NCBI RefSeq assembly: GCF_006345805.1
Contig: NC_043016.1
Span: 29,760,001 to 29,824,000 of the forward strand
Reading direction: 5' to 3'
Source of the DNA: Octopus sinensis
Taxonomy: Eukaryota
DNA: 64,000 nt
Both the position numbers and the translations under genes were made by a program. Shown in pieces: positions 23,203 to 62,588 of the stretch (the first letter of the stretch is position 1; each line of letters starts with the position of its first letter). The notes beneath the pieces are model-generated. The model saw only the letters and a program-made list of their open reading frames with translations. It searched no databases and was not told where the DNA came from.

Positions 23203-23381
23203 TTAAGAGATTTTAAATGCTGCCAACTCCTCTGAGGACAAATAAATGTCTGGACACATAGACCAATCTTGTTTATCTTTATATTCCCAATAATTTCCTT
23301 TATACATGTGGATCAGGTTACCGGTTATCTTGTCAGTTTCTTTTTTAAACCAAATTGGTTCATAACCAACATATTCTCGAC
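23203..23381 (-). CDS. OSBP: OSBP last coding exon (ORD C-terminus)
   Basis: Acceptor ctttttcag|GT, phase 1; GREYVGYEPIWFKKETDKITGNLIHMYKGNYWEYKDKQDWSMCPDIYLSSEELAAFKIS*. Matches the OSBP YKGxYWE..QDW..CPDI terminus. Confidence 0.93.
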
Positions 23382-23819
23382 CTGAAAAAGCAAAAGAGCG
23401 GACAAAAAAAAAAAAAAAAGACAAAGATTAATAAGATTTGTAATAAATTAAGAAAATATAAAAAAAACATACAATTATTTTGTAAATGACTGATTAGAAA
23501 TAAAAATCAAACAACAGGCAACTTGGCTTTTGTCTCTGTATTTTATACCTTGTCGAAATTGAGAGTTTGGTTTCTGCTAACTGAATTATATGAATAAAGA
23601 TAACAAATAGTGAAAAAGGGATCAGTTATTCCCCCACCCTCACTATTTATCCATCTTCATTAAAAGCAGAAGCATTTATTTAAGGCCTGAATTAATTGTA
23701 TAAGATGTCTTTGCGAACACTTAAACAGAGTAATTAGTCCTTGGAATTCCAACAAACAACTGAAATAATACCCGTTGATCTTTCCCACCCCCACTCTCTT
23801 GGTTTCAACAAAGATGTAC

Positions 23820-24147
23820 ATATAGTCAAGGTATGTGTGTGTGTGTGTGCAAATATATACATGCACATATATGAACATACATATATACATACATATGCAT
23901 ATATGTATGTGTATATACACACACACGCATCAATATATGTAAATACACATACACATATATATACACACACGCATACATACATATGTAGTGTTCATTAAAA
24001 GTCTGCAGATATATCCTGTTGAACAGTATATAACTTTGAAACATGCAGTATCTAATTTATTCACACACAGACATGTGCATGAGTATGTGTGTGCATATAC
24101 ACTCATATATTTGTACATAATGCATGTTTGTGTGTGTATTTATGTAT

Positions 24148-24227
<80 letters not shown>

Positions 24228-24305
24228 TACACACATAAACTCACAAACGTGCATTAATATGTACAAATATATGAGTATATGTATATGCACATACACACAC
24301 ACACA
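23820..24305. repeat. Compound (TA)n/(CA)n/(TG)n microsatellite with an internal inverted repeat
   Basis: About 480 bp of mostly alternating purine-pyrimidine sequence; ~80-bp arms flank the central (TA)n. Confidence 0.85.
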
Positions 24306-24709
24306 CTATATTCAAATTTAAACTTTTTCATTAACGATCTTTTGTTTTTCATTATTTTTAAACTCATTAATTCATTAACAATTTGAATTTAGTAACAATA
24401 ATGTTTTAAATCCAACATAAAAAAACTAATATAAAAAAAAAATGAAAAGTCTTTTAAAAAACAGTCAGATTTGTACTTTTAATACAACACAATTGAATTT
24501 AAAATATCTGTTCCTCTTTCCACAAATTTATATATATATACAAACACACAAAGTTTATTATGAGGTATACCCAAATATTTCAGCTATTATTGCATTCATA
24601 AATTACATAAAATAAAATTAAAGTGTACCAGATACTTCTTTTACTTCTTTTATAGCAAGAATGTAAAACAAACACAGCAGATATTTATGATTGTCTCTAG
24701 TATTTAGCA

Positions 24710-25129
24710 TACTCTTTTACTTGTTTCAGTCATTTGACTGCGGCCATGCTGGAGCACTGCCTTTAGTCGAGCAAATCGACCCCGGGACTTATTCTTTGTA
24801 AGCCCAGTACTTATTCTATCGGTCTCTTTTGCCGAACCGCTAAGTGACGGGGATGAAAACACACCAGCATCGGTTGTCAAGCAATGCTAGGGGGACAAAC
24901 ACAGACACACAAACATATACACACACACTTATATATATATATATACATATATACGACAGGCTTCTTTCAGTTTCCGTCTACCAAATCCACTCACAAGGCA
25001 TTGGTCGGCCCGGGGCTATAGCAGAAGACACTTGCCCAAGATGCCCAAGATGCCCAAGATGCAGTGGGACTGAACCCGGAACCATGTGGTTGGTTAGCAA
25101 GCTACTTACCACACAGCCACTCCTGCGCC
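24710..25129 (-). mobile_element. Full-length young SINE family A
   Basis: Reverse complement of the 13906 copy, with a local TGCCCAAGA slippage repeat. Confidence 0.88.
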
Positions 25130-26094
25130 TATGTTTAATTTGTTTAATTTACAAATGCAGTGACTGTTGCAGTCTTTTGGTGTACCTCTTAGTAAACTTT
25201 AGAATGAATAATAAATACTGTTGACAATTTGAATATGCAGGTTTCTTTTTCAGGGTTATAAAATCACTATATTTGGTTGAACTTATCTACAGTGCAAGAT
25301 GCTGAGCGACTACTAAGTGAAGGACTAGCTACGTGTTTGGGTAGGGTGTTGTTTTTCTGTAGCCATCACAGCAAAAACCACGCTGAAAAACAGTCACTGC
25401 AGTTCAATGTCCTATTGTCATTTGTGTTATCACTATATCTAGGGAATCGATGTTTCTGTTGGATTCTGCCAATGAACATGACAGAGGGTATTTACAAATT
25501 AAGGAGACTGCTGCAGTTTGGCTGCAGCCTGATGCACAAAAGACAAAGTCTACCTCAGTGGAATTGTAACTCAGAATGTTAAGCTGGGAAAAAATCCTTT
25601 TTGCACAGGGCCTGAAATTACGGCAGAAGGGGTTAGTCAGTCACAGCAACCCCCAGTGCTCAACTGGTATTTATTTTATTTTATCTCCCACCCGCCACTC
25701 ACCCCTGAAAGAATGAATTACCTTTTGTACTGATGTTAGCAATTACATAACTGTGGTGAATACATTGCATTGAATTCCTCATCACACACACAAACACACA
25801 TACACATTGAACTGTAAATATTAAGATCTGCAAGATAAATAAACCACTGAAACTTCTCCACAGTTTCCTGCAGGGCCTTTAAAGATCTAACAGGAAAAAT
25901 TAGTAATGTTTAATCAACATTTCTTGCAATTAATATCAATAAAATTAGAGAAATTGTGTTGAGATTGCTCTTTGGTCAAATTCTCGTGTTATGTTACTTT
26001 GCTGGCTAAAAACTTAGCAAAGTCTATAACTTAACCCTGCTGGGTAAAACTTAGCAATTTTGTTGCTTCTTTCTCGACAGCAAAATCATACGCA

Positions 26095-26285
26095 TCACCA
26101 TCATCATCGTTTAACGTCCACTTTCCAAGCTAGCATGGGTTGGACGATTTTGACTGAGGACTGGCGAACCAGGTGGCTGCACCAGACTCCAATCTGATCT
26201 GGAAGAGTTTCTACAGCTGGATGCCCTTCCTAATGCCAACCACTCCAAGGGTGTAGTGGGTGCTTTTTATGTGCCACCAGCACGT
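26095..26285 (-). mobile_element. RTE LINE 3'UTR fragment
   Basis: catcatcatcgtttaacgtcc..ctggatgcccttcctaatgccaaccactcc..gtagtgggtgc, the reverse complement of the tails at 33660, 47640 and 60745. Confidence 0.7.
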
Positions 26286-26990
26286 TAAAATAAAATAAAA
26301 TAAATACCAGTTGAGCACTTGGGGTTTGATGTAACTGACTAACTGCCATAATTTCTGGCCCTGTGCAGAAAGGATTATTTTTCCAGCTTTACATTCTGTG
26401 TTAAAATTTCACTGAGGTAGACTTTGTCTTTTGTCCTCTTGGGGTTGATTAAATAAGGACTAACCAAGCACTGTGCTGATGTAATTGACTAAACCCCACC
26501 TCTCTCTTGAAATTTCAGGCTTTATGATTACAATACAAATGATTTTCAACCACTTATTGCCTATGGACTCCTCTGATTTCTCTTTTACTCTACTGGACAC
26601 CCTTAACAATTCAATGTATTTAAAAAATGTTCTACTGTAACAAGCAAATTAGCAAGTTAGAAAAATCTCTATAAGAGATGCAAGTAGTAACAATACAGAG
26701 GAGAGGTAATGTTTGTTGTCACTTCAATATGGCTGTTTTGTATGAACCAACATTACTACCGTTTTTAAGAAGGTTTCCACTTGGGGTTAAAAATGGTAGT
26801 AACGTCGATTCTACTGCTATTTAAAAAGTTTTTTTTTCATAATTAAATATTATTGAGAATTGTATAGAAAATTTAAAATATTTTGTGTATTGTAGAAATG
26901 TAACATAGATTTTAACAACAAACTCTTATATGGATGGACCCTGGTTGAGAACTACTATTATAGTAGAAAGGAATGTTTTTTTTAATTATT

Positions 26991-27315
26991 TATTACCTCC
27001 GCCTAAGCGAAGATGGAAGTATTATTTTCAATTGTGTTTCTTTGTTTGTCCATGAACAAGATATCTCAAGAACCACTGGATGGATTCAGATGAAACTTTC
27101 AGGGATGTTTGGCCTCATAACTGGCATGAACTGATTAGATTTTGAGATCGATCTGGTACCGGATGAGGATTCTGGATTATTTTTACTTAATTTTTGAGAG
27201 CAGTCGGGTTCATTTTTAGTATTCTTATTTGTGAGAAGAGTCGAATTTATTTCAGACTTTCTCCTTTTAAAAACCACCTCTGCCTTGGTGAAGGTTTGCC
27301 TCTCTGTTTATCTTG
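26991..27315 (+). mobile_element. DINE/Helentron-like non-autonomous element
   Basis: Homologous along its length to 11921-12250. Confidence 0.55.
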
Positions 27316-29459
27316 TTTTTTTTTTTCAAAGTTATTTTTGACAACACCAGACTTTTAGTGTTATACTTGTATTAGTCAAGTGATCTGATATGAAAGAATG
27401 TGTTGAAACCGAGACAATTAGATTGCAAAAGAGTCATGTTAGCCATTCAAAACACACACGATTATACTGACTTTTGTTTTATTTTTCTATAGTATATTAC
27501 AGGTTACATGCAGTAGAGTTATAACAACCATCCAAAATACAACACACACACAGCATTATATTTACTGTTTTATTTTACAATAGTAGAAAGTTTGTTGTTC
27601 ACCTTGACACCAATACAATTCTACTGGAACACGGTAATATATATATATATATATATATATTTTTGTTATTTGGAAAATAAAATTATCCTTACAAATTATA
27701 TAACCCATGAGAAATAATTAGTTTGGCACTCTCATCCAAGACCTCTCATTCATTCACACACACACACATACAGATGTTTTGAATTGCAAGCAGAAAACCT
27801 GTAAGATAAACAAACCACTGAAAAAATTTGCGTAAATTTTCAAGATATAGGTTTTTTTTTCTTTTTAAACAGGCAAAAAAAAAAAAAGGAAGATTAATGT
27901 AAATGGCATATTTATAGCAGAGACTAAAACTACAGATTAATAGACACTATAACAACTACAACAACGCAGTTAGATTGTATAAAACACGATATGGAAATTA
28001 TATATATATATGTATATAAAGGCAAATTCTGTAGAGAGGAATTTCTAAAAAGTACAAAGAAAACCATACAGGCTGGCAATGAACAATGAAAGGAGTGGCA
28101 AAATGAAATGACTACATAAAAACAAAAACTACTGTCCCAGCAAAAATATTTGTAAAGCTACAGAAGTTGTTCATCATACCTGGCAACTAGTGACTTATAT
28201 TCACAAATGACTAACTGTTAAGCAAATAGTTACAACAACAACAACAACAATAACAACAACAAAGGATATGGGGCTTGTTTTGCAAATACATTTTCATTTC
28301 CATGCAAGATTTTTTTTTTTTCAAATGAATTTATGGTGGTGGTAGCGGTGGCAGTGGTAGGGAGATAGAGATATAAAAACGAACGCATACATACACACGT
28401 GTGCATGCACGCACACACACACACACACACACAAAACAAAACAAAAACTTTTATTTTAAGCATAATGTCATAAGTATAGGAAAATGATGAAAACAATGTT
28501 GGTAATACAGAGATGAGTTAGTTTACCCAGTGTTTCTGTTTTAACAAAATTATAATGGAAAATACACATTCGTGTGTGTGCATGTGTGTGTGTGTGTGTG
28601 TATAAGCTGATCTTAAAATGTATAGAAATTTTAATACACTTTCTAACACAATTTAGATTTTGCATATTATTTCATAAGTGGTTTCTGATTTCTTTAAATT
28701 TAAAGCTCTACATATGTGTGTGTCGTTTACTCAAACACACACAGACACTTCCATGAGGTGCGGGCATGGCGATGTGGTTTGCAGCTGTGCAGTTTTGGGT
28801 TCAGTCCCACTGTATGACACTTTGGGCAACTGTCTTTGTGTGGTGTGTGTATATACATACAAACAAACAAACGTGTGCGTGTATGAGTGAATATATATTT
28901 ATAATGCCTGCTTGCAATATATAAATCGGGTGCAGATTGCATTGATAACTAGCTGGAGGATGTTCTTCCTGGGGTTAAAAACAGTAGTAACTTTGATTCC
29001 TATGGAACAGCCATATTGATATGGTAATAAAATACATTACTTCTCAGTATAGTTGCTCTTATCATCTCTTATAAAGATTTTCTAACTAGCTACTTTGTTA
29101 TATATATATGAATAAGTAAATGTGTTCACACTGATAGTATTCACTTAGCGATGATGATAATGACATGATATTTATGTCACACATAGAGTGTGACATACAT
29201 AGAGTGTGATGACTCAGTGGGTCATATGAAATCTTGGTGGTATAAAATTCATTGCTTGAAAAGCAAGTTGTAATGCTTTGGCACCAGTGATGGCAGCTGG
29301 CAGCATGGAAAATGCACACTTAAAAATGATAAGAAGTGTGTACAGGAAGTTAAAATATGGCTTACAGTCTACCCTAAAACATTATTAGATTACTTTTCAA
29401 CAGCTGATTCAGAAGTTAGAAAATTAAAATTTTTTTCCAAATTGATTCCATTATAAAGT

Positions 29460-29691
29460 TTAAACCCTTTAGCATTCAGATTACTCTGTCAAATCTAATG
29501 TTTATTTATCCACTTTATTTTGAAGTAATTATGTATTATCTCATATCTTCAAGATTTTGATGATGTGATTGCTTATTTTTTAGACTGACATTGCATAGGG
29601 TAAGTGTGAGAGGCTAAATCTGGCCTGTTTGAACATAAAACAGATAGAATATTTGGGTTTGGTATGGCCAGTTTGAATGCTAAAAGGTTAA
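29460..29691. mobile_element. piggyBac-type MITE
   Basis: TIR (ttaa)accctttagcattc ... gaatgctaaaagg(ttaa). Confidence 0.75.
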
Positions 29692-30574
29692 ACGAAAATA
29701 TCATTTCTGTAGAAGACCTTATAATCTAATCACAGTTTCAAATTAATTTTCATTTTTCTCACATGTTTAGTTCTTCAGATCAGAAAATGTACAAAGAATT
29801 TCATACCAGTGCCACAACTGGAGATGATTTTTCTCAGTCCTACTTGCTAATTAGTACAAATTACTGTTGCCAATTTTACCTTATTAAATAAGATAAAAAT
29901 GTCAAATAATTTCATATTGCAGCATTTAGAAAAGTTTTGATCTTGGTTTTTTTTTTTTCTCAAAACACAGGTATGATGAAAGTTTCATTTCTGATGTGAT
30001 TTGGGAAATAATCTCACTGAAAGTGTAAAACACATTCCTATAAATGATATAAAGACACCTAAATTTCTATAAACCCATTCCTATGAATAGTAATACACAG
30101 ACCTACATTAAAAGAACAGCTTCCAAGTGATGGAGTGAATAAAGAAAATCCCTATGAGTAGATATGGCCACATAGTTAAAGACCATTTTAAAAACAAGTA
30201 AGTTCCATGGTTCAATCCTACAGAGCAGTACCATGAGTAAATTTCTTCTACTTTATGTGCAGTTGGACCAAAGCTAAATAAGTGAAATTAGGAAGATTGT
30301 GTAGAAGCACAACCACGTGTGTGTGCGTGTGTGGGAAGTGAGTAATAAATCATTGTGATTATCAAAACTACCTTGTATCATTTTGTTGCAAGGTGGACTC
30401 AGCAATTTGATGAATAGGGGTCAATTGAATAAGTATTAAACAAAGTAAATGGGTTGATATAACCAACTAAAATTATTGGTGGTGAAGAGAGAGCAAAAAG
30501 GATATGTTGAAGGAGCAATAATAATTTGGAGAAGCGTGTGTATGTATGTAGGTGCTTGTGTATATATGTGTGTG

Positions 30575-30870
30575 TATCATCATCATCATCATCGTTTAAC
30601 GTACGTTTTCCATGCTAGCATGGATTGGACAGTTTGACCAGGCTCTGGGAAGCCAGGAGGCTGCACCAGGCTCCAGTCTGATCTGGCAGTGTTTCTACAG
30701 CTGGATGCCCTTCGTAAAACCAACCACACCATGAGTGTAGTGGGTGCTTTTTATGTGCCACCGGCACAGGGGCCAGAGGAGGCTGGCAACAGCCATGATT
30801 GGTTGGTACTTTTTACGTGCCACCAGCACAGACGCCAGTCAAGACGGTGCTTTTTACGTGCCACTGATAC
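30575..30870 (-). mobile_element. RTE LINE 3'UTR fragment
   Basis: Same (CAT)n-gtttaacgt tail and tttttacgtgccacc repeats as the other copies. Confidence 0.7.
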
Positions 30871-32029
30871 ATATAGATACACACAAAGTATGGAAGTTTA
30901 GTTCATAGGTGATCTAAATAATTAGGTCTGTTAGATAAGTGCTGTAATGGATTACTAGGGCTCCAAGGTTGTATCCAAGACAGTAGTCATGGAGCCATTG
31001 CAGATTTCCAATGTAGCGAATGTATGTATATATATATATATATATACATATATATATAAAACTAATATTGCTGCATGGTTAAATGAGAAAGTTAAGTAAA
31101 ATGGAGCCTGAAGAAAACGGGTAAATAAAAGAAGACAATTGACACCAATAGAACAATTGTAGATGGGATTGTGGCTATTTGTTACAAGTTTGTAGCAACA
31201 CAAAGAAACCTAGTAAAAGAATCTTCTGGAATCATTACAATTCCATCGGATATCACAACATGGAAAGACAGTGTAAGTATGCGAAAACTAACTGTGTGCA
31301 ATTAATAATATAGCCATAATTTGCTTATTTCTTCCGTTTCAAACAATAATATTTAATGTGAAAGAGGGCAGAGTTACTTCAAACCGTAACAGAAATCACC
31401 ATAAGTATTATTTCAGATTCTATTTGTGATTATATGGAACAAAATAAGTGCTTCATTTCAAAAATAGATATAATTGTACTAACTGAATGTTTACATAAAT
31501 AATGTCTATACAAGAACAAGTCCACCTAGACATATAGAGTAGCTTTATGCTGCCTTAATTTTATCTAGATGATGAGTCAAACAACTTTTATAGCACAGAT
31601 TATCAAAACAGTTGGATTGGATAATTAGCGTTGACTGTTATATTTTCAAAAATTTTAATTATAAATTTTTGCATCATATTTACATAGAAATTAAAGTCAG
31701 ACACGTCAACCTCATAATGTCTTAGATTCTAACGAAACCTAAATGAGTAAACCCTAACAATGACTTGATTTTATATATATATATACACACACACACACAC
31801 ATACATATATTAAATTCCATTACTATTAATCTGTTGTATTATTCAAAACTCACTGGAACATTCTTGTCAAGCAAGACAGAAAAGAAAAATCATAGCAGAA
31901 AAGCAGACACCGATTTAGTCAATCACATGTTTACTTACTATTCACCACACAAACCAATTGTTACAGCAGAAATTGTTTAATATTCATATGAAGTAAAGTT
32001 TCAAGTGAGATACCTGTTTAAATATTTAA

Positions 32030-32720
32030 ATACCTGAGCTAATCCTGGTCAACAAGTTTGAGTACCTAGACTCCATTACTGACCAAACAGTGGATTGCAG
32101 CCAGAAATTTAAAGCAAGACTAAATGTAGGGAAGGTCAGCCTTGAAGACAATTAGTAGAATACAGAGACACAGCACGGTCAGAAAATGCATTAAGCTGAA
32201 ACTTCTACAAATCCTACTCTGGCCAGCAGTGTTGGGTAGGTGTGAAAGTAAGGACCTTATGGGTGGTTGACACCATGTTACCGAGTGTGTTGGAGATGTG
32301 CTACAAATGTATGTGGTGACTGCTGAACAAAGAATCTGGTCCTTGAGTAGATGGGAGTGGATCAAACATTGGCAATGATGATGATCAGGTAGTGAACTTG
32401 TAATATTTCGACCATGGTAGCATGGCCTAGAACCTCTTTGTCAGTATACTTGGAAGCTGGAGGGGCAGAAAATGGGTACATGAGAAATAATGATAAAGAT
32501 GGAATGATGAAATCAAGAACTGGACAGGGAGGATCCTGGTGGAATGTACAGTGGAACGTGGCATGAGATTAAGGTGTGTGGTGAGGAGTGGGGTGGGGTT
32601 GTGTTTGAGGCTCAAGGGAGGGCCCTGGTGGAATGTAAGCTTTGATGGGAAATCACAATGTGGTGAGGATTGGGGGTTGTGTTTGAGATCCCTAATCCTC
32701 AAGATGGCTATACTCATTCA
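32030..32720 (+). mobile_element. Decayed RTE LINE ORF C-terminal region
   Basis: VNKFEYLDSI..DCSQKFKARL, KLKLLQILLWPAVLGRCES and GWNDEIKNWTGRILVECT resemble RTE motifs (F.YLGS, KLRL..ALVWP..LYGCE, RW.D.IK.WTG). Many stops and frameshifts. Confidence 0.6.
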
Positions 32721-32989
32721 TGTGATATATCTAAATATTTAGATACCATATATTTACATGTGTGGTATCTGAATGCAGTAACATAGTGCTCTAAATTAGG
32801 TATCACATTATGTTTGATATATGTAGAATATACTGAACCCGATTACAACAAAGAACTTTTATTTCTAGTCCAGTCCTGGTACAAGATGCAATTCCAGAAA
32901 TGATACACTGTTTGACAACTGGAGGTCCAACTGATTGAAATGTAAATTTAGTTGTAAATAGTAAATGTCTGTCTTAGTAAAGAGCCCCC

Positions 32990-33325
32990 TTCGCTCATGA
33001 ATGACCATGGGGTTGCACCTAGAAAGTTCCTCTCTAAGGCACAAGTCCGGGCAAGGTTGTTTATGGAAGACCAGCAGTCACCCATGCATACCAGCCTCTC
33101 CTCACCATGCCACCGATGTTGTCCAAGGGAAAAGCAAAGGCTGATACAGTTAGGCACCAATGACATCACAACTCATTTCTACAGCTGAATGAACTGGAGC
33201 AATGTGGAATAAAGTGTTTTGCTCAAGAACTCAACACACAGCCGGGCCTGGGAATTAAACTCACAACCTCATGATTGTAAACTCAATGCTCTAACCACTG
33301 AGCTATGAGCTATGCACCTTCACAA
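32990..33325 (-). mobile_element. SINE family G
   Basis: Homologous to 9845-10147. Confidence 0.7.
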
Positions 33326-33659
33326 AGTTGTAAATATCATGCTTTTGATCTTGCAAAATGAAAGTAATACTTTGCAACATTATAATTTGTATGACAGCTA
33401 CGTTTCTCCTCTCGTTATGTTTAATATCTAACAACAAATATTCCATCTGCTTCTCATTCAATGATATTCCTCTTCATCTTCAGACTGGCATCATTCTCAA
33501 TAACTAGCTTTACCAACAAAAATTCTAGAAATAATTAATAAAAAAAAATTTAAAAAAATGAGAGGTTGTTAGTTGAAAGCTATAAAAGGTAAAGTTCACT
33601 TCAGCAGCATTGGAACTCAGAATGTAAAGAAATTTCTCCAATACTCAAAGTCAGTGTTT

Positions 33660-33950
33660 TCCAACCATTTTTTACCAGCGCCGCCTCGACTGGCTTCCAT
33701 GCCGGTGGCACGTAAATTGCACCAATCCGACCGTGGTCGTTGCCAGCCTCGCCTGGCACCAGTGCAGGTGGCACGTAAAAAGCACCCACTACACTCAAGG
33801 AGTGGTTGGCGTTAGGAAGGGCATCCAGCTGTAGAAACATTGCCAGATAAGACTGGAGCCTGGTGCAGCCTTCTGGCTTCCCAGATCCCCGGTCAAACCG
33901 TCCAACCCATGCTAGCATGGAAAACGGACGTTAAACGATGATGATGATGA
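33660..33950 (+). mobile_element. RTE LINE 3'UTR fragment with (GAT)n tail
   Basis: ggcacgtaaaaagcacccactacact..ggcgttaggaagggcatccagctgtag..ggacgttaaacgatgatgatg. Confidence 0.75.
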
Positions 33951-34971
33951 TGTCTAACCCTTAAAATAAATCATATGTCTCAAGGAACCTCTGCACAAAG
34001 AAAATTATATACCATATCTTTCTCATATTTTTTTATCATAGTTCACATGGAAAATATCATATATATATGGTTGTTATATTTTTTTGATAATATAATAGGT
34101 TAGATAGGATGATGTCTATATTATAATAACCAATATGTTGTGTATGTATAGTAATATTACGATCATAAAATTAGAATTAAATTATCTCACTCTTTCTCAA
34201 AGAACCCTTAAGAATGACTTGGTTGAGAATTAAAGCAGGTATTATCTTCTTCATCATTCATATCATCGTTATTATTATTCTCTGTATAAATATCACAAAT
34301 ATACTAAAATATACTAATTTGTTTTCAATTTTCTTATACTATGAAACAGTAATTTTTAAAATAAAAAAGCATTTTTATAAAAAAAATGCCAGAACAAAAG
34401 GAAAAGAATGAATGTAACAATCTGCTAAGATATTTGAATATAATATCATTAATGGTAATGAAAATTAAAATGAATATGATAGGGGATAATGACAAAGGAA
34501 AAAAAAACCCAGCATATGTGTGTATGTATAATATATATATAAATAAATATGTTTATAAGTGTGTGTGGGAATGTGTAAGATGGCACATCATCATGATTTT
34601 ATCCACCATAGCTAAAACAATAGAAAAAAACCAAACATATCTAGAAGATTAACAAAGCACGTTAGAATTACACCAAAATTAATTGAGTAGAAACAAAAAA
34701 AAAGAAAAGAAAAAGAAAACAAATCTTATTAATCTAAACTATCAACTAAATTACATAAGGATAAAAAAAAAAAAGAAATAACTTGATTGTAAAAGACAAG
34801 AAAATGAAAAGGGACAGACAAGTAAAAGGCTGTTAGTTATGTCAGTGCTATATTAGTTAAAGACTACATGGCACGAGCAGTAGTTATGAGGCAGTGGCTT
34901 TTATACAGTGGTGGCAGCAATGGTGACAATGCTAAGGTGTAATATATATATATATATGTGTGTTTATATAT

Positions 34972-35004
<33 letters not shown>

Positions 35005-35044
35005 CACAATACAGTGAACAAAACACAGAAGAAGTTGCTCTTAC

Positions 35045-35062
35045 CAGAATTTTCCCCCTCAT
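35045..35062 (-). CDS. OSBP: Putative 18-nt alternative microexon of OSBP (DEGENS)
   Basis: Pyrimidine tract tttttctctttcactcttttctctc..acatttag|ATGAGGGGGAAAATTCTG|gtaagag. Phase 1-1 matches the host intron and adds no stop. Confidence 0.6.
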
Positions 35063-36455
35063 CTAAATGTCACCACGAGAGAAAAGAGTGAAAGAGAAAA
35101 ACATCAATTTTAAAAAACACGGCCAATAAAACTGAGGAAATAGAAAATGTTATGTTGGAGAATAAAGGGAATCACCATAAATATGCATAAAGCAGAAAGT
35201 CTTATTGCAATAAACACACACACACACATTCATGTGTGCTGTGAATATATATATATATATATATACATACATACATACATACACACTTTGTGGATTAAGA
35301 AGGCAACCAATGGTTTCATGTGTGAGCAATCTGCACAATTATTCAAGCAAACCACTTGTGAATGCTGGTACACATCTCTGTTTTTGTAATATTATCCAAA
35401 ATGGAGACGAGTGTCAACATTTCCAAGTGGTTCACTTAATTGTGGAAATCACTTACACATGAAACCACTGGTAGCCTTGTTAACCCATAAATGAAGAATA
35501 TTTATCCACCAATGCGGTCATCAGTACTCATACTCACTATTCAATTCTAGCATGTGCATGTATGTGTAAATATATATATATAGGTATCAAGCACATACAC
35601 ATATCATCATCACATCAACATTTTAATATCTACAATCCTATAATTCCATGCTTGCATGGGCATCAAACAAGAGTATGGTTGGAGCAGAATTTTCAAAGGC
35701 CAGAAGCCCTGTCTGTCACCAACCCCCATCACTTGTTTTCCAAACTGCTCAGACACATTTACGTTCAAAACCTGAAACAAATAACACCTTATAAACGAGC
35801 CTTTTGTCTTCAAAGATTGCACACGTCAAGACCTGTCATAGATGTGCTTTCATAGCGGACTGCATAGTAAGCAAACTACAATTGTTAGCAAAGCCATTGT
35901 TTTACAATTAAGAAATAATCACATGTGTAGACAAGGAAAATACAAACTCACCCTCTCTCCCATATAAACACACACACACACACACAAGGGGCTTAATCAC
36001 AGTTTCACTCACAAGGACTTGGTTGGCCTGGTGATTAGTAGAAAACACTTGTCCAAGGTGCCATGCCGTGAAACTGAACTTGATACCACATGATTAGGAA
36101 GTGAACTTCTTAACCATGTAGCCATGCCTGCACCTCTTGTCCATGCAACCTCCTATCCATCCATGTGTGTGTGTGTTTCTGAGTGCATGTGTGTGTATGT
36201 ATATGTGTGTACACAAACACATGCATGTGTTCTCAAGCTGATGATTTGATCAATTGCAACTCAGAGTTTCTCATTTGGTGTACATTTTCTGCAGGAACAA
36301 AGAGATGAGTGGCTGCTGAATGGACCATTAGCTCCAAATAAATAAACTCCATTACAAAAGTCTTGAGTATTTTTTTCTTCTGTTTATTCACACAAGACAA
36401 CATGGATGTTTGTCTTGAGTATAAGAAGGAAATTAAAATTACGTACAAGACTAAA

Positions 36456-36725
36456 TGGCCCAGTGGTTAGGGCAACGGACTCGCAGTTGGAGGATTGCGG
36501 TTTCAATTCCCAGACCGGGCATTGTGTGTGTTTATTGAGCGAAAATACCTAAAGCTCCACGAGGCTCCAGCAGGGGGTGGTGGCGACCCCTGTTGTACTC
36601 TTTCGCCCCAACTTTCTCTCACTCTTTCTTCCTGTTTCCATCTGGGGTGGGGACACACATATGCCACTGAAACCGGGCCCATGAGCCTGGCTAGGCTTGA
36701 AAAGGGCGCATAAATAAAAATAAAA
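36456..36725 (+). mobile_element. tRNA-derived SINE (distinct family) with A-rich tail and 11-bp TSD
   Basis: Head tggcccagtggttagggcaacggactc..ggtttcaattccc; ACAAGACTAAA duplicated at 36445-36455 and 36726-36736. Confidence 0.85.
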
Positions 36726-38036
36726 ACAAGACTAAAATGTTCAATGGAGGAAAGGAGCAGGGGGTGAATTTAATTTTCTCAAAGTCAGCAACATTTAGAT
36801 TGAAAACTTCAAGTAAAAACTACTTCAGGTAATTAAAAACAGGTCACAGATTTGATTCTTCACATAAGAATATGTAACAGAAATATAAATATGCCCAGAA
36901 ATATAAATGCTTTTGACAGCAGCTGTACAGGATATAGACTCATTCACTAAATGATCTTTTATAAAGTTACAGATGTAATTCAGTCATAATTGAACCTGAT
37001 TAGACAAAAACTGAGATGTAACAGTGTTTGTGATAATTTACCCTTAATGTCAAATGAAATACCTACTAAAGACATCCTGAATTATAATACTCTGGGTACA
37101 TTGGCATGATGATATTCAGCGGTACTTTATGGTCAAAAGCACTGAATACTTCAACATTGTCAATCAGTATTCATTATCATCATCATTTAACATCCATTTT
37201 CCATACTGGCATGGGTTAGATAGTTTGACTAGAGACGGTAAGCTGGAAAGCTGTACCGGGCTCCTGTTTGCGCTGGCTTGGTTTCTATGACTGCGCAAAC
37301 ACTGTCCAACCACTCCACAGAGTTTACTAAGTGCCCTTTACATGTCACCAGCACGGGTGCCTTTTATGTGTCACTGGCACAGGTACCATTTACATGTCAC
37401 TAGCACTAGGTCAGGTACTCTATGATTGAAGTTATCTTTAATTAATGTTATGAAGACTGATCTACATTCTGACTCGACAACCTATGCTGTTTCCTGTATG
37501 ACTGACTATGGAAACTACATAACATAATTTAGTTGTATTGATGGACCAGTAACTATCTGGGTAAGTTGTAAGGACAACACTTGGAATATAAATACTAAAT
37601 CAGGGGTTGGGAAACTTTTTTTAACCAATTATCCCAAATATATATATTTGCACTGATGTTACCCACTTGATTTGAAAGGAAGAAAATCATAGATCCTTTG
37701 AATTCAAAAGGTTTATTGAATCTATTAATGTGAATTTGTTTACATGTTCATTCCATCAGACAGATGCAATGTAGCATCAAGGAAAATTTCTGTCATAACA
37801 AAGAACACGTTTTTATATACTTTTTACTTATGTCTGATGAGTCCTCGATACCTCTAAGAATTTCATTTTCACCCCACTTTGTTGACCCTTGCACTAAACA
37901 AAGAATCTGACAAAACCGCTGTAAAAATAGTGTCATCACTTAAACCAGAGGCTTCCAAACTGCATGTTGCAACACTTTGACTTGAGGAATGAAGCTAAAT
38001 CTAATTACTTGTGTTGAAAAAATCTGGCCATGAGAT

Positions 38037-38260
38037 TTAACCCTTTAGCATTCAAACTAGCCATATCTGGCCAAAATATCCTACCCATTTTATTATCAAA
38101 CTGGCCATATCCAGCCTCTCATACATACCCTACAGTGTCATTGTAAAAATGAACCACATCATTTAATTCTCAAAGCTACAAGACAATGCATGATTAATTC
38201 AAAATGATACCAATAAAAAGGCCTAACATTTGACAGAGTAATGTGAATGCTAAAGGGTTG
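38037..38260. mobile_element. piggyBac-type MITE
   Basis: ttaaccctttagcattc ... gaatgctaaagggtt. Confidence 0.75.
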
Positions 38261-38509
38261 AGTGAGATCTAATGACCTTGTGTATAAATGGTTGCATCTC
38301 TAGTGACATGGCGATGTAATTATTAAATTACAGACAAAATTTAATAAATTTATTATGCAAAAAATTTATTTTTGTAATTTGTGTTACCAAAGTGGTAAGT
38401 TTGGAAAGCTGTGGTTTAAATGGTGCTATTCAACATGAGAGAGAGAGAGAGAGATTTAGAAAATATTATAAAAGAAGAATCATTCTCATGAAAGGTCAAA
38501 GACATATAC

Positions 38510-38846
38510 TCTTTTACATGTTTCAGTCATTTGACTGCGGCCATGCTGGAGCACTGCCTTTAGTCGAGCAAATTGACCCCAGGACTTATTCTTTGTAAGC
38601 CTAGTACTTATTCTATCGGTCTCTTTTGCCGAAACGCTAAGTTACGGGGACACAAACACACAAACATACACACACACATATATATATATGACAGGCTTCT
38701 TTCAGTTTCTGCCTACGAAATCCACTCACAAGGCTTTGGACGGTCCGAGGCTATAATAGAAGACACTTGCCCAAGGTGCCACGCAGTGGGAATGAACCCG
38801 GAACCATGTGGTTGGTAAGCAAGCTACTTACCACACAGCCACTCCT
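38510..38846 (-). mobile_element. SINE family A
   Basis: Reverse complement of the family A consensus, ending about 70 bp from an OSBP exon donor. Confidence 0.8.
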
Positions 38847-38914
38847 ACCTGCAAACTCTGAGGAAATCTTGACCATTTTAAAAAAAAGAGAGAAAGATTT
38901 AAATGGTAAAATAC

Positions 38915-39135
38915 CTTGAGATAAAGACGCTTCTGCTTCCGCTTCTCTCCGTCGTCGAGCCATACGCTGTTTATCTTCTAACATAACTTTTACTTTATTG
39001 GCCTCTTCCCACCGACCATCTTCCATCAAACGTTGGTCAGGTCGATTTCGGGAATCTGTAGATGCTACATTCTCTTCGGGTTCATTTAATTCAAGAGCCA
39101 ATTGTGTAAAGTAATACATACGCTCTGACCCATTT
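38915..39135 (-). CDS. OSBP: OSBP coding exon (ORD)
   Basis: ttggcag|A ... CAAG|gtattt, phase 2-1; NGSERMYYFTQLALELNEPEENVASTDSRNRPDQRLMEDGRWEEANKVKVMLEDKQRMARRRREAEAEASLSQ (conserved DSRxRPDQR..ME.G and EEKQR-like motifs). Confidence 0.96.
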
Positions 39136-46678: not shown

Positions 46679-46876
46679 AGGCATGGGGATTTTAGAAAGC
46701 TCTTTGCCAATACAATTTTTCATAATGCTCCATAAATTCAGACTATAGTTTGGTCGTTCCAATATAGCTTTCCGACGAACCCTTGGGCGTTGTCCTATAC
46801 TACTTTCACTGATAGAGCTTTGCCTGTTTTTGTCTTGACTGGCATTTCTTCGGTGTGAACATTTAGCACCATCTTT
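46679..46876 (-). CDS. OSBP: OSBP coding exon (linker and start of ORD)
   Basis: gtcttacag|AAA ... CCT|gtaagt, phase 0-0; ends RPNYSLNLWSIMKNCIGKELSKIPMP, essentially the vertebrate OSBP sequence. Confidence 0.97.
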
Positions 46877-49489: not shown

Positions 49490-49524
49490 CTAATAACAGA
49501 TATAAAAAAAACAAAACAAAACAA

Positions 49525-49563
49525 ATTATAAATATAATAATAATAATGATGATAATAATAATA

Positions 49564-49595
<32 letters not shown>

Positions 49596-49615
49596 TAATA
49601 ATAATAATAATAATC
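49525..49615. repeat. (AAT)n microsatellite
   Basis: About 90 bp of imperfect (AAT)n next to SINE B tails. Confidence 0.9.
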
Positions 49616-49619
49616 ATGG

Positions 49620-50070
49620 TTTCAAATTTTGGCATAAAAACCAATAATCTTTAAGGTAGGTGGGTTTGAGTCAATTACATTGACCCCAGTGTTCAATGTA
49701 CTTATTAAATAGATCCTGAAAGGATAAAAGACAAAGTCGACCTTGGTGGAATTTGAGATCAGAACAAAAGATGGACAAAATGCTGCTAAGCATTTTGCCT
49801 GGCATGCTAACAATTCTGCCAGCTTGCCTTCTTAATAATAATAATAATAATAATGGTTTCAAATTTTGCCACAAGGGCAGCCATTTTGGGAGAGGGGATA
49901 AGTTGATTATGTTGATCCCACCAGTGTTTCACTGCTATTTAATTATCGACCCAGAAAGGATGAAAGGCAAAGTCGATCTTGGCGTTATTTGAACTCGGAA
50001 TGTAGCGGTGGGTGAAATACTGTTAAGCATTTTGTCCAGCATGCTAATGATTCTGCCAGTTCTCTACCTT
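49620..50070 (-). mobile_element. Two tandem SINE family B copies
   Basis: Family B motifs on the minus strand, separated by (AAT)n. Confidence 0.7.
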
Positions 50071-50273
50071 AATAATAATAACAATAGTAATTTATTTGCT
50101 GCAAAGGCAATAGCTGGGAATGCATTAAAATCAATGAGAAAAAAAATGACATGAAAAACAAGCGTGCCACAGGAATGGAACAAGGGGCTTGAAATATGGG
50201 TACCCCATAAGTCCCCGATTACCTTAACTTCTAAAGGTAAATACTTGTGTCTTCTGCAACGAATATATATATA

Positions 50274-50325
<52 letters not shown>

Positions 50326-51035
50326 TGGAAGTAGAACCATTTACACGGGCCCACCTTTCAGTAAATTTACTGGAAAGCAGGACCTCCTCCTCCAACTTCA
50401 TTTTCTTCTCGTAAGAAGTTGATAAGGGCTTGACCAAAGAGTGAAGTCACCAGACAGTGGACAACTGTCTTTCTCTTCAGGCCAAAGGAAAACTGTTTTA
50501 TGTCAGATTTTCCACACTAGCATGGGTTAGATTAATACGTGTTATTGAAGTAATGTTTTTATATGTGGAAGTTTTCATTCCATTTGTCTTTGAAAGACCA
50601 AGTATATCAGATTTGTTGAAAGTGTAACTCAACAAACACCGTTACTTATAGCTCAGTAATTTTCAGTGAAGTGCAGAATGTAAACATTTACACACACGAT
50701 GGGCTTTGTACAGTTTCTGTCAATTGAATTCACTCTCAAGGCATTAGTTGGCCCAGAATTATGGCAGAAGACACTTTTGTCCAGGGTGCCACACAATGGG
50801 ACAATATGTCAGGAGTGTGCTGCCAAATTCATTTCATACTAGACTGGGATTTATTACATCAACTCCATAATAGGGTAAAATTCAAAACCAGCTTCTGTGT
50901 TTTTTCAACCAAGAATGTCTTCCTCTATGATTAAATAGAGGAAGACATTGTCTATCAATCTGCCAACAGCAACAACTACCATTATCAATATTTTCTAGAA
51001 CAGGAACACAAAATTTGGGGGTGGGGAATAATAGA

Positions 51036-51235
51036 TTAAACCTTTAACATTTAAACCAGCCATATCCAGCCTCTCACACTAACCCTACAATGTCATTCTT
51101 AAAATAAACAATTATATAATGAAAATCTCGAGGCTATGAGATAATGCATAGTTAATTCAAAACAATATGAATAAAAAAGGATTACTCTACCAAACATAAG
51201 GTTTGGTAGAGGAATCTGACATGCTAAAGAGTTAA
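51036..51235. mobile_element. piggyBac-type MITE
   Basis: ttaaacctttaacattt ... atgctaaagagttaa. Confidence 0.7.
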
Positions 51236-52098
51236 ATCAAGCCCAGTACTTGTCTGGTATTTTATTGAACCTAAGGGACAAGAGGCAATGTTGACTTTTG
51301 TGGGATTTGAACTCGGAATGTAAACAGCTGGAAGAAATGCTGCAGGCCTTTTTTTGCCTGATATTCCAATGATTCTTCCAAAATGACCAGGTGTGTGACA
51401 CTAATTTAATCAATGCCTGAATCACTTATTTTAAAGAGTTCCTCTTAACTTAGCTAAATCTTCAACTGTACCACCTCGGCCCTCCCAAAACTCCTAACTC
51501 TTTTACTTGTTTCAGTCATTTGATTGTGACCATGCTGGAGCACCACATTTAGATGAACGAATCAACCCCAGGACTTATTCTTTGTAAGCTTACTACTTAT
51601 TTTATGTTTTTTTTTTTTTGCTGAACTACTAAGTTACAGGAATGTAAACACACCAACACTAATCATCAGGCGATGGTAGGGGGACAAACAGAGACACACA
51701 CACATACACACATAAATACGTTCATACATACATATACACATCTGCACTGCTAGATGCTCCTGAACCAATTGTTGAGCGTCCCAGCCATAAGAGACCAATG
51801 CTAGATGTGTTAAAACAATTGTCGTGATTAATAATGAATTCTTGTATATATACCATCCTCCATTTTTCATTTGCCATATATATATATGTACACACACAAT
51901 GGGCCTCTTTCAGTTTCTGTCTTCCAAATCCACTCACAAAGCTTTTGTTGACCCGAGGCTATAGTAGAAGACACTTGTCCAAGGTACCATGCAGTAGGAT
52001 TGAACCAGGAACCATGTGGCTGGGAAGCAAGCTTCTTACCATACAGTCACTCCTGCATCCGTTTAATTTATTTATTTTTAAATTTCCTTTGAAAGTAA

Positions 52099-52611
52099 TC
52101 TATATATATAAAACTGTAGTTGTGTGAGTGTCTGTCCCCTTCGATTTAGATTCCTAACTCCTCCCACATTTTGCGGTGCAGTTTAACCAAATTCGGGTAT
52201 CTTATAGTCGTGATTCATATCGAGCCCGTCTGGCTATTAGCGCACGTCTACGATGAGTCTACGATTTTAAAAATAATTTAACATAATTTTTTATTCCATT
52301 TTAATGCATAATTTTTCGTGTGTCGATGGCGGCGGAGTTGGCGTCCATGGTCACACCTGCACCTGTTTGCTTCTCCCCCTTCTTCCCTCCCTCGTGAAGC
52401 TGTGGGGAAGGGAGTGTAAGGAAATCAACGTCTTAAAGTGTTGTCAAGGAGACCAGCGTTCTTTTAGAACAACGACTTCATGGCTTGAAGACACCAAAAC
52501 AGAAATGGCTAAGTAAGCCCGAATTGGCATCTATAAGGGAAGTAACTCTCTAAAAATGCTTATATAGTTATTTCCCTTACAAACCCGAGCAACGCCGGGT
52601 GATACTGCTAG
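52099..52611 (+). mobile_element. Complete non-autonomous Helitron
   Basis: A^TCTATATATATAAAAC 5' end, hairpin CCCGAGCAACGCCGGG, CTAG^T 3' end; CpG-rich, so probably young. Confidence 0.85.
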
Positions 52612-55600
52612 TTTCTTATAAAATATGAGCTACTGTGAAGTTTTACAATAACTTGGAAGCAATGATTGGTAAACTAACACCTGATAGAATTTAATACCAA
52701 AACTAAACAGATCGCTATAGCAGAAGCAGCAGAGGCTGTGTTTCTGCAATGAAGAGTATCAAGATTGAAGTAATACTGTTAAAGCACAGAGATATGTATC
52801 CCACAGGCATGGCTGTGAAGCACCTTCTGCTATAGCCCTGGGTCAATCAAAGCCTTGTAAGTGGATTTGGTAGACAAAATGAGGAAAAAAGTCTGTTGTA
52901 TGTATGTATGTGTGTGTGTCCTTGCCTTGACATCACATAATAGTCGTAAATGAGTGTCCCTGTCATACATGCAGTATTGCTCATTTCTAATATCCTGCAT
53001 GAACATGTCTAACCATTGTGAAATATCATCTTGCTTGGAAACCAGATGCATATCCTGTCTCGTGACAGGATGGGCATCTGGTTGTATAAAACTTGTCTCA
53101 AATTTTGTCAGACCCATACAAACATACAAAAAAAACGGTCATGTGATGATGATGATGAGGCTTTGTATAATGAAATCACTTGAACTTCAAGGGGACTATA
53201 GTACCTAAATGTATTATCATAAAGCATATGAACCTTCCGGTGTTGCCGGGTCATAGTGCTAATAAATAAATAAATACTAGGGTTAATTTATTCAACTAAT
53301 TACTTCAAGGATGTGTCCCAGCATGGCCACAGTCCAATGACTGAAACAAGTAAAAGACAAAAGTGCCTTCTACGAAACCCTTGAGTTAGCTAAACCTGTG
53401 TGAATGGAATTTGATAGAAACCATACTGAAACTATACACACACTTGACACTCCATCAGTTATGATGACGAGTGTTCCAGTTGATTCAATCAATGCAACAG
53501 CCTACTCGTGAAATTAATGTGCAAGCAGCTGAGCACTCCACAGTCGTGCAGTAACTCTAACGCAGTTCTCAGAGAAATTCAATGTGACACAATGGCCTTT
53601 TGAAATACAGGTACACTGCACTTTTGATAGCTCAGTGAACTGGAGCACACGACAAAACAGTGCCCCTGCATCAAAGAGACAAATAATCATAAAGGCTGAT
53701 AATTTAAGGTGTTGGAAAACTAACTATACAGCCAACAGCTCAAACTTTATTGCAGCTACTGGGCAAGACACAACGATACTGTTTGCCACAATCTGTCTGA
53801 CTGACAAAACAGGTTCCACTTCTATGTCCCAAGAATAGTAAAATATGAGGAGTAAAAAATGGCATAGGCTGGTGAGAGACAACTAAAACAATATATATAC
53901 ACACACATATATGTCAGCACATATGTATGTATACACACACACATACATACATATATTTATGACAACAAAAACCTACCCAAACAAAAGATATTAAATACAT
54001 TGTTTTGATAATTTTTTTTTTTTCCTGATTTGGTTTTTGAAGGTGGGCAGATTAGGTATTTAGAAATAACAAACTGGTCTAACTACATTCTCACAACAAT
54101 GCTATTTCTTTAAGAGCTATTTTTGTACCTGAGTAGGAAAAAAAAAACAAACAAAAAATTGTCTATAAAGCAAATAATCCTAAAACCATGTGCAATATTA
54201 TATTATTAACCACATTCGAAGTGTGTGTAGTGTGTGTGTATATAAAAAGAATGAATGGAAAAGAAATGTGTATTTGAAGGGAGGGTGAAAAATAATGGTT
54301 TACATAGCAGAAGTCGCAAAATTATATATGTATGAGTGTATATATAAATATATATAATTTTATATAATTATATATAAAGCTGCGATTTCTGCTTGCAAAC
54401 CTTAATATATAATACATAATATATATATATACATACATACACACACACATATATATGCAAGCTATAGTAAACTATGTAGCAGTCAAAATTAGCCCTGTTG
54501 CATTAGACTGGCAAACAGCCAACGTCACAAACTAATTGGTTGGATGACTTTACAGAGAGATTCTTTGAGTGCCATAACACTGAACAGCAAAATTAGTCCA
54601 ATGAGGCAAAACCATAAACAATATCATAAATAAGCAGCCAGTGGTAACAAATCTTAAAACTTACAAAAAAACACTTTGCAAAATATGGCAATATTTGCCT
54701 GGCCAAGCAGAGGAAAAAAGGTGCATACAAAAGTTGTACATATGTGCTTTGAAGAAGTTCATTTTACGACTACATGGTCGCAAGTCTGACTTCAGTGCAA
54801 GACAAATTGGGAAACCTTATACTAATAGTTATGGATTAGACAATAACTTTTGAGTGGGGTTTGGTAGGTGAAAACTACACATGCATGCGAGCACATGCAT
54901 CTATGTGTGCATGTGCACACATACATGCATGTCCATGGCTATGGTTTTTGTTTCCTGAAGAGTTTACCTTCGTGTCCTGATAGGTTCCATGAATTATTGG
55001 TTAATAATATAAATATGAACACACTGACATTAAGTATTGGGCGGGGGGGGGGGGCGATACAATGGATTAAACTCTTGAAGGTCGTGCCTTAAATGCTGCA
55101 GTTCAGTGACATACTAATAAAAGAATACATACATACACACACCTGTGGGTATGTATGTGTATATATATATGTGTGTGTGCGTGAATGCCTGCACATGTTA
55201 TTTTAATGCCAACTGTTCCGTGCTTGGACAGGTCAGAGTTTTCTATGGCCTGATGCCCTCTCTGACACCAACCTTCACCCATTTCCAAGTAAGGTGATAA
55301 CCACCACCACTTTCTGGCAGACAAAAAAAGAACTGGCCTGGATATGTTTATGTAGAGAACTGGAAACAAACGGTGTTTGAATCAGCCTTTTGTTTGCCAT
55401 CAGAGAACACATGTGAAGATAAGAAAAAATTACAAACACACACACATAAATATATACATATGTTTTCACACACATATATACAACCTGCATCAAAGCACAA
55501 TGGGGCAGAGGTTGGATTGTTGGGACCATGATAAGGCCATTGGTTCAATTTAATTCACGAGTGCAGCTCTCCCACGCCACGACCTGAAGCTACAAAAGAC

Positions 55601-56191
55601 AAAACTCCTAGTGCTATGTAGGGACAATGATCCCTGAACCATGTAGTTACATAGTGAATGTTTTAATTGTACAGCCATGTGTGTGCCTGTCCATACACAC
55701 CGTCTCTCTCTCACTCTCTCTATCTCTCATGTATGTTTAATGTCTATTCAGATCCCCTATCAAGATGTCCCACTGCAGTAACTTGCAGATGTGTTGCTCC
55801 CATCTGACTTCAAGAACCTATCTGATCTTTTGACTCTCAAATTTAGAGAGACTGAGATGTTTCTGAAGAAGAGGAGACCCAAAAGTGGGCCCTATGCAAC
55901 AGTGATACCTCATTCGAAATTTACAAACACAGCCCTGGTATCTCCAGAGTGCCAGTGAGTGTAGTACAGTAAACAGGGAAAAAAGAAACTAGATTGCATG
56001 CGTACACACACACACACAAGCCACCCTTATCAGTCATAAGATAAGTGCTTTATCATGACTAAGAGTTGTTTTGACACTCTTATTTCTAGCAATGTTGGTG
56101 CTAACTAGTACCCCAATCACTTTAGTAACATATATAGTTCTGCCTTTTGGTTGTAAATTGCAAATAAGCCACCTTTATCATATATATATAT

Positions 56192-56235
<44 letters not shown>

Positions 56236-57139
56236 ATATAAGATAAGAAAATGGAGAAATACATCTAAATCAAATATCAATTACCAGATAATACTCAATC
56301 ACATACTTTATTAAACCACCACATAAGAGACATATATATATATATTATATATATATATATAAACAGTGTAAAAGCTGAAGACTACTTGTCCCAGGGGCAG
56401 CCTTTTGCTATCAAAGAAGATTTTTCAACCCAGTATTTACATGTTTTTATTTATAACTTTATATGCTTCGAGATCCACTCTTCCAAAAGCCAATTATCTC
56501 ATGTTCTCTTGAACGATTATCAATTCTTATGACAACCATGCATGCATGCATACACACACACACAGTGTACTTTTCTGTGATGGTAAAAATCAAGAAAAAG
56601 TACTCCATCTGGTGAGAGATAAATATTATTAAATAAATACAATGGGTAGCACATAAAAACCATATATTGTGTTTATTTAAGAACTTCTTTCCTTACATAA
56701 AATACACCATAACATGAAAGAATGATTACGACAGGCATCTTCGGAAAGATTGCTGGTTTAATGTTGTCTGTGATTGATTACATTACTGAAGAACAACAAG
56801 CACAAAGTGAAACTCCTCTCAACTTTCGGGACATTAAATGCTCAACTGTAGTATAATTGTAATAACCATTTGTCAAGAGATGAGAGGAACAGAAATTAAT
56901 TGAAATGATAACAGGCAAACAAAACAGCCTACTACTTTTAAGGAAAATAAAAGTACAAGGCACTTAGGAAAACATTGGATAGCTCAATAGGTCACCCATC
57001 AGCGATGACTTTGAGAGATTATCCTAACTGCAAATGAGTGACACTCAAACATAAACAAAATTCCCTGAAATATGAATTTTGAGGGATAAATCAGAAGCTT
57101 TGTCATTGTCAAAAAATAATAAAAAAAACAATGGATTAT

Positions 57140-62537: not shown

Positions 62538-62588
<51 letters not shown>

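Follow-up and report, generated by a model that had tools for sequence, protein, structure and literature searches.

Neural microexons that depend on SRRM3/4 (the eMIC class) are symmetric exons of 3-27 nt, for which a UGC motif and conservation of the flanking introns are typical. Their described architecture joins a strong donor to a weak proximal 3' splice site, with UCUCUC and a strong block of pyrimidines and branch point displaced from the AG, and the UGC motif, present in 74-79% of the SRRM3/4-dependent microexons, is a frequent feature of the class, not an obligatory one (bioRxiv 10.1101/2024.09.17.613571). A 2026 survey whose species set includes O. bimaculoides reports that, across bilaterians, the same genes have evolved neural exons repeatedly; only two neural exons, those of APBB and MADD, are confidently inferred to be ancestral to bilaterians, and OSBP is unmentioned in the survey's main text (bioRxiv 10.64898/2026.09.05.749416).

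Among the oxysterol-binding proteins themselves, a short exon is found in the teleost paralogue OSBP2. A search with the C-terminal 138 aa retrieved two eel isoforms that differ by six residues, X1 reading ...ALEE-ECDYDS-GREYEGY and X2 ...ALEE-GREYEGY, and catfish OSBP2 proteins (Pangasianodon, Ictalurus) carry ECELDS at the same junction. In Anguilla anguilla the residues are encoded by an 18-nt exon of their own, of phase 1-1, within the homologous intron (ctcctcttctctccattggttgtctgacactAG/AGTGCGATTATGACTCTG/GTGAGTtt, locus L002, 3802-3819; slashes mark exon borders), and Pangasianodon hypophthalmus OSBP2 likewise has an 18-nt exon (tctctcttttttcctcccggttctcAG/AGTGTGAGCTTGACTCTG/GTGAGTtc, locus L006, 5940-5957). 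A literature search for microexons in OSBP or OSBP2 found nothing relevant, and the teleost exon was not found discussed in the literature searched. We consider this teleost microexon, a by-product of the present analysis, to be more solid than the octopus candidate to which it is compared below.

The host gene and its last intron

The window, by which we mean the whole 64,000-nt stretch of Octopus sinensis DNA that was analysed, contains nine exons of OSBP, the first being the FFAT exon (~49.4 kb) and the ninth the last exon of the gene (23.4 kb); together they cover residues ~257 to the end of the protein. The identity of the host gene follows from its 448-aa conceptual product, which is 90% identical to the OSBP of Acanthosepion pharaonis and 89% identical to an OSBP1-like protein of Argonauta hians. 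No OSBP coding exon was found within the window upstream of the FFAT exon (49490-64000). The part of the gene for residues 1 to ~256, which include the PH domain and the coiled coil, must be separated from that exon by an intron longer than 14.5 kb with many SINE-like repeats. One of the exons in the window, exon C (46679-46876), lengthens the Ser-rich linker by ~12 residues (…NRQSSISESSIG…), which Sepia-type proteins also have and Argonauta does not.

The penultimate exon (38915..39135, minus strand) encodes …NGSERMYYF…LEDKQRMARRRREAEAEASLSQ plus a G, and ends ...TCT CAA G/gtatttta at position 38915, with the donor CAAG/gtatttta. The last exon begins cag/GT CGA GAA TAT at 23381 behind a very strong acceptor (score 10.0); its coding part (23203..23381, minus strand) encodes (G)REYVGYEPIWF…FKIS and closes with a TAA at 23205..23203. 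From these two exon ends, at 38915 and 23381, the last intron is therefore 38914..23382, 15,533 nt long and of phase 1, which agrees with the gene, the intron and the phase named by an earlier sequence-only reading of the window.

The candidate exon and its splice signals

That reading had singled out a candidate 18-nt exon in this intron, and its pyrimidine tract, acceptor, 18-mer and donor all proved to lie where it had placed them, as did an open frame through the insert. The candidate cassette microexon, ATGAGGGGGAAAATTCTG, occupies 35062..35045 on the minus strand, in the context ...aaaattgatg-tttttctctttcactcttttctctc-gtggtgacatttAG/ATGAGGGGGAAAATTCTG/GTAAGAGcaac.... It has the form of a microexon, being 18 nt long, a multiple of three, free of stop codons and of phase 1-1 as its host intron dictates, and splicing it in turns the junction SLSQ-GREY into ...EASLSQ-DEGENS-GREYVGY..., with the Gly codon rebuilt (G/GT). 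The predicted inclusion junction is TCTTTATCTCAAG/ATGAGGGGGAAAATTCTG/GTCGAGAATATG, and the predicted mRNA strings are GCGTCTTTATCTCAAGATGAGGGGGAAAATTCTGGTCGAGAATATGTTGG with the exon included and GCGTCTTTATCTCAAGGTCGAGAATATGTTGG with it skipped.

Upstream of the exon, the tract tttttctctttcactcttttctctc (35101..35077, minus strand) has pyrimidines at 24/25 positions, contains UCUCUC and lies at -15..-39 from the exon; its best 20-nt stretch is 19/20 pyrimidine. The spacer between the tract and the acceptor AG, gtggtgacattt, also given as GUGGUGACAUUUAG, is AG-free, and the AG-exclusion zone that results speaks for the exon. The acceptor AG itself (35064..35063, minus strand) stands in a weak, purine-rich proximal context, gtggtgacatttAG. 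A putative branch point, TTGAT (35103..35107, minus strand, with its A at 35104, 41 nt from the AG), is located just upstream of the tract, as read from the yUnAy consensus only. On the other side, the donor CTG/GTAAGAG occupies 35044..35038 (minus strand). By approximate metazoan weight matrices, which give rough values, the donor CTG/GTAAGA scores 5.06, higher than all eight authentic OSBP donors in the window (-3.1 to 4.85), and the acceptor (-20..-3) scores -0.97, which equals the weakest real acceptor of the gene, the others ranging from 1.1 to 10.0. The acceptor scores weakly because the pyrimidine tract sits at -15..-39, behind a purine-containing spacer.

In its symmetric length, strong 5' splice site, displaced pyrimidine and branch-point block and UCUCUC, the candidate is thus like the SRRM3/4 class, whereas UGC, typical of that class, is absent both between the tract and the AG and in the 45 nt upstream of the exon, which counts against it, and its flanks are unconserved relative to Argonauta. 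The QKI-type motifs to which the sequence-only reading had drawn attention are indeed present, as a bipartite and also branch-point-like ACTAAT-N14-ACTAAC (34857..34852 and 34837..34832, minus strand, 188-213 nt downstream of the donor), but they are no better than chance in the window, which holds 21 bipartite elements of the form ACUAAY-N1-20-UAAY against 25 expected by chance. The single motif ACTAAY is depleted in the window, with 58 occurrences on both strands against 98 ± 9.5, all 100 of 100 dinucleotide-preserving shuffles holding at least 58.

The DNA around the candidate is AT-rich (GC 0.30) and has microsatellites on both sides, (AT)n/(TATG)n at 34942..35004, starting 41 nt downstream of the donor, and (AC)n at 35214-35228 with (ATAC)n at 35247-35283, ~150 nt away upstream of the exon; these flanks form a neutral-looking context. 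The ~2 kb around the site had been described as poor in repeats, and 34001..36000 is in fact without an intra-window repeat, but the segment 31001..33000 is equally clean. Dispersed-repeat copies of the candidate site were found neither elsewhere in the window nor in the orthologous locus of Argonauta hians (L001), and an origin as part of a repetitive element was rejected on this single-copy status. An Rfam search of the window gave no match. Further upstream, 225-430 nt from the candidate, lies a palindromic inverted repeat of ~205 nt (35287-35491, 74% self-complementary), possibly a MITE-like element or a hairpin.

The reading that we favour, although we put it at just short of an even chance, is that the candidate is a young, convergent cassette microexon confined to the window species' lineage, with minority or tissue-restricted inclusion. 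U2AF and U2 would then be recruited by the strong distal branch point and the UCUCUC-containing pyrimidine block 15-45 nt upstream, and U1 by the near-consensus CTG/GTAAGA donor, whose strength would allow an exon of 18 nt to be defined despite the weak proximal acceptor. Inclusion would preserve the frame. The sequence signals, the frame, the position in the fold and the existence of the fish counterpart are shown, whereas it is inferred that the candidate is spliced at all, that its use is regulated and that lipid exchange is affected.

One could also speculate that the same donor or acceptor is occasionally spliced in other combinations, as a longer poison exon or with intron retention, and that the outcome is non-productive. 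Recursive or stepwise splicing is common in long introns, and a donor that outscores every authentic OSBP donor in the window would suit such cryptic use, but nothing specific points there and no alternative partner site is singled out; we regard it as improbable.

Chance expectation for splice-site pairs

Long introns contain more decoy splice-site pairs than real exons, and an exon below 30 nt depends on special enhancers. The candidate may accordingly be a pseudo-exon, a chance combination of a tract with its acceptor and a good GT, never or negligibly spliced and without function, the acidic translation and the agreement in length with the fish exon being coincidental and aided by a reader who picks the best-looking candidate. 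We give this explanation somewhat less than an even chance. In the last intron of OSBP, 19 AGs are acceptor-like, with a tract of 17/20 Y or more, and 19 donors reach a score of 3 or higher; an analytic null predicts ~0.14 in-frame pairs of 3-30 nt for the intron and ~0.8 per window strand. Since ~0.8 pairs are expected per window strand, the splice signals of the candidate alone are not beyond chance in a scan of 64 kb, where one pair is unremarkable. By summed weight-matrix score, moreover, a stretch of 15.5 kb has in each phase 2-4 decoys that match or exceed the candidate. The null was built on the counts of real acceptor-like and donor-like sites; dinucleotide shuffles were not used for this purpose because shuffling destroys pyrimidine tracts. 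The setting in microsatellite-rich, AT-rich DNA, the missing UGC enhancer and the chance level of the QKI motifs also fit a pseudo-exon, as do the missing conservation in Argonauta and the lack of a separate-exon insert among the cephalopod and other mollusc proteins retrieved. With intronic pseudo-exons in general the candidate shares its lack of conservation, its location in a long, repeat- and microsatellite-rich intron and a chance number that is not negligible.

Against this explanation stand the quality of the signals and the nature of the peptide. A signal scan (tract of at least 17/20 Y and AG-free to the acceptor, donor of at least 3, length 3-30 nt, open frame) run on both strands over 388 kb of mollusc sequence, from the window, the Argonauta locus and a Lymnaea locus, returned two matches, both in the last intron of OSBP, namely the candidate (pyrimidine count 19, donor 5.1) and a 9-nt pair at 31862; in the ~370 kb of other mollusc sequence there was no comparable pair. 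The same scan of the fish loci gave the two OSBP2 microexons as the top-scoring matches (tract 19/20, donor 7.2), so that, in contrast to intronic pseudo-exons, the candidate has the same signal profile as the two microexons verified at the homologous site, and its peptide class and length match those of real inserts at the same place in the protein. Its coding content is unusual against random decoys of 18 nt. Among 1,066 random open 18-nt AG..GT segments, 6.9% encode a net charge of -2 or lower, 1.3% reach the level of the candidate (-3 or lower), and 0.47% give peptides that are both acidic and hydrophilic throughout. Multiplying signals by peptide class (~0.14 x 0.013-0.069) gives a joint rarity of 0.002-0.01 for the intron, a figure that is post hoc, as the scan thresholds and the acidity criterion were picked after the candidate had been seen.

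Between a young microexon and a decoy we therefore see a coin flip, with roughly even odds for what is a well-formed candidate. A rough estimate of the probability that the exon is genuinely used runs from three to six chances in ten, varying with the prior, which is a few percent for the birth of a lineage-specific exon in the last intron of OSBP, and with the discount for post hoc choice. If the candidate turns out to be a decoy, it illustrates how persuasively a chance pairing of splice sites can mimic an exon in a long AT-rich intron.

Conservation and transcripts in molluscs

In the orthologous locus of Argonauta hians (L001) the last OSBP intron is 20.9 kb long. A blastn comparison of the 15.5-kb window intron with this intron returned dispersed SINE and LINE repeats only, a search of the Argonauta intron for the 18-mer with its flanks gave no match, and a relaxed signal scan of it revealed no analogous acidic exon. 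The coding exons are ~90% identical at the protein level, and a constrained microexon should have stood out in this comparison as the sole conserved island of the intron. The sequence-only reading had staked its proposal partly on conservation of the 18-mer and its splice sites in related species, and in Argonauta, the one related octopod whose intron was compared, both are absent. A 15/18 match at L001:44080, at approximately the right distance, was considered as the Argonauta orthologue and rejected: it lies in a LINE endonuclease reading frame (…GDWN…), has no AG/GT borders and its flanks are unalignable.

Two other features of the Argonauta intron may be recorded. A LINE endonuclease-like reading frame extends over L001 ~43.9-44.3 kb (…LLLLGDWNGILD…), and a tandem duplication with a period of ~5.85 kb (L001 50.7-54.4 kb and 56.5-60.3 kb) causes decoy exons to recur 5,851 nt apart.

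The insert was not found in the cephalopod proteins and transcripts that were compared, where two sequences of Argonauta, that of Acanthosepion and three Sepia-type proteins derived from Logan transcripts (seen on 11+9+1 contigs) all read SLSQ-G(R/W)EY. Nor was an insert encoded by a separate exon present in the listed members of ten mollusc and brachiopod clusters (Mytilus, Patella, Babylonia, Crassostrea, Haliotis, scallop, Biomphalaria, Ostrea, Ruditapes and Lingula), the insert of Lymnaea, in the Biomphalaria cluster, being an exon extension. A nearer relative is represented by one Logan contig (SRR11869384), limited to the last exon and ~780 nt of the intron, of which the alignable part is ~85% identical. 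A bait search with 580 aa of concatenated open reading frames around the candidate site gave no match, and neither did an exact-pattern DNA scan of metagenome contigs for the candidate. Among the transcript-derived proteins searched, none from octopus reaches across the junction. The OSBP gene of Sepia spans 126 kb.

Position of the insert in the protein

We located the insertion point in an AlphaFold2 model of a Sepia-type OSBP orthologue without the insert, built with 29 sequences, in which the C-terminal region has a pLDDT of 79-90. In this model a long helix (691-722) ends at ...SLSQ and is followed by a loop (723-733) and a strand (734-738, PIWFK), at a pLDDT of 84-90, so that the earlier placement of the insert in the loop after the EEKQR-like helix was right. 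The helix carries the invariant E-x-x-Q-R of LEDKQR (702-706; E702/Q705/R706), and the modelled insertion point is on a surface loop, 16 residues or ~4.5 helical turns past this motif. The solved OSBP ORD structure 7v62 aligns through the region with a clean gap of six residues opposite DEGENS.

The E-x-x-Q-R motif contacts the PI4P phosphate in Osh4/ORP structures. It had been suggested that the insert could tune lipid exchange; at ~4.5 turns from the PI4P-contacting motif, 16 residues beyond it on the surface, this is conjecture. What inclusion would do, by the model, is to place the acidic and disorder-prone DEGENS at the end of the long C-terminal helix of the ORD, before the loop that leads to the terminal beta strands, and so to lengthen a surface loop. 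Judged by the consensus S-x-x-E, it would also create two CK2-type motifs, SQDE and SGRE, the second of which is created by the teleost OSBP2 exon as well. Should the candidate be used, the helix-end loop of the lipid-binding domain of OSBP would be a regulated surface, possibly with CK2-type phosphosites.

Recurrent inserts at the helix end

The candidate and the teleost OSBP2 exon share more than their place. Both lie in the intron between the exon of the LE[ED]KQR helix and the last exon, both are of phase 1-1 and 18 nt long, both are acidic (DEGENS compared with ECDYDS and ECELDS), and both end TCTG/GT, leading to ...S-G-R-E-Y. The teleost exon resembles the candidate further in its pyrimidine tract of 19/20 and its strong donor, with the tract set back 16 nt from the AG in eel and nearly adjacent to it in catfish. 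The two differ in that the teleost exon is kept between eel and catfish and belongs to an annotated isoform, whereas the octopus candidate is unannotated and unconserved in Argonauta.

These likenesses could be due to common descent, the candidate being orthologous to the teleost exon and inherited from the bilaterian ancestor. The shared intron, phase and length, the common ending TCTG/GT with [DE]-x-x-x-[DN]-S encoded before GRE(Y), and an order of pyrimidine tract, purine-containing spacer of 14-16 nt and AG that is common to octopus and fish (the catfish tract being nearly adjacent to the AG) would all agree with this. Only 8 of the 18 bases are identical between the candidate and the eel exon, however, and the insert is absent from Argonauta and from those proteins of cephalopods, molluscs and brachiopods that were examined; the spacing is unchanged in 200 of ~240 OSBP C-termini, bird fragments show no clean insert of 6 aa, and the survey of neural exons infers only APBB and MADD as ancestral, with recurrent evolution widespread (bioRxiv 10.64898/2026.09.05.749416). 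Judged from these sequences, ancient homology appears close to refuted, and we hold it to be very improbable. As the paralogue and the phylum differ, any relation between the two exons is one of convergence, and a young octopus exon, which we favour, would function in the manner of the 18-nt exon that teleosts have there, while having originated independently. If used, it would provide a cephalopod case of the recurrent evolution of microexons in the same genes of bilaterians, and its position in the protein would coincide to the residue with that of a vertebrate exon.

The same point of the protein has received other short inserts. In 200 of the ~240 OSBP C-termini the distance from the E(E/D)KQR motif to P-x-W-F is the standard one. 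Inserts occur in a crustacean-like transcript with +6 aa (GTQHDD), the damselfly Hetaerina with +8 aa, an insect-like transcript with +5 aa (SLQSD) and Lymnaea stagnalis with +5 aa (EGDNG); the bird OSBP and OSBP2 fragments retrieved had no clean insert of 6 aa. Like the candidate, these inserts follow the helix and are short, and most are acidic or rich in Gly, Ser and Asn. Their presence in fishes, arthropod-like transcripts, the damselfly and Lymnaea marks the site as a recurrent target of short, mostly acidic inserts. It is a bolder and rather doubtful proposition that the helix-end loop of OSBP is a hot spot of microexon birth, reached independently in an octopod lineage and in teleost OSBP2, with other inserts in arthropods; if true, one structural position of a lipid-transfer protein would give a clean example of microexons evolving recurrently and convergently.

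In Lymnaea stagnalis (L003 ~55702-55971) the penultimate exon of OSBP is 15 nt longer than that of Biomphalaria, reading …RARSEG-EGDNG/, apparently through a tandem donor further downstream and not through a microexon. The resulting GEGDNGRE had been considered as a mollusc homologue of DEGENSGRE and was rejected, since it arises from this 15-nt extension of the penultimate exon.

A second microexon-like pair in the same intron

The other match of the mollusc scan, of 9 nt, lies at 31854-31862 of the window on the minus strand (tttttcttttctgtcttGCttgacaAG/AATGTTCCA/GTGAGTtt) and has no counterpart in Argonauta. With a tract of 18/20, a donor of 4.0 and a UGC at -11..-9 from the AG, its layout is the classic SRRM4-type one, unlike that of the 18-nt candidate. 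In phase 1 it would give SLSQ-ECS-S(REY), changing the Gly to Ser, with the predicted junction ...CTCAAG/AATGTTCCA/GTCGAG....
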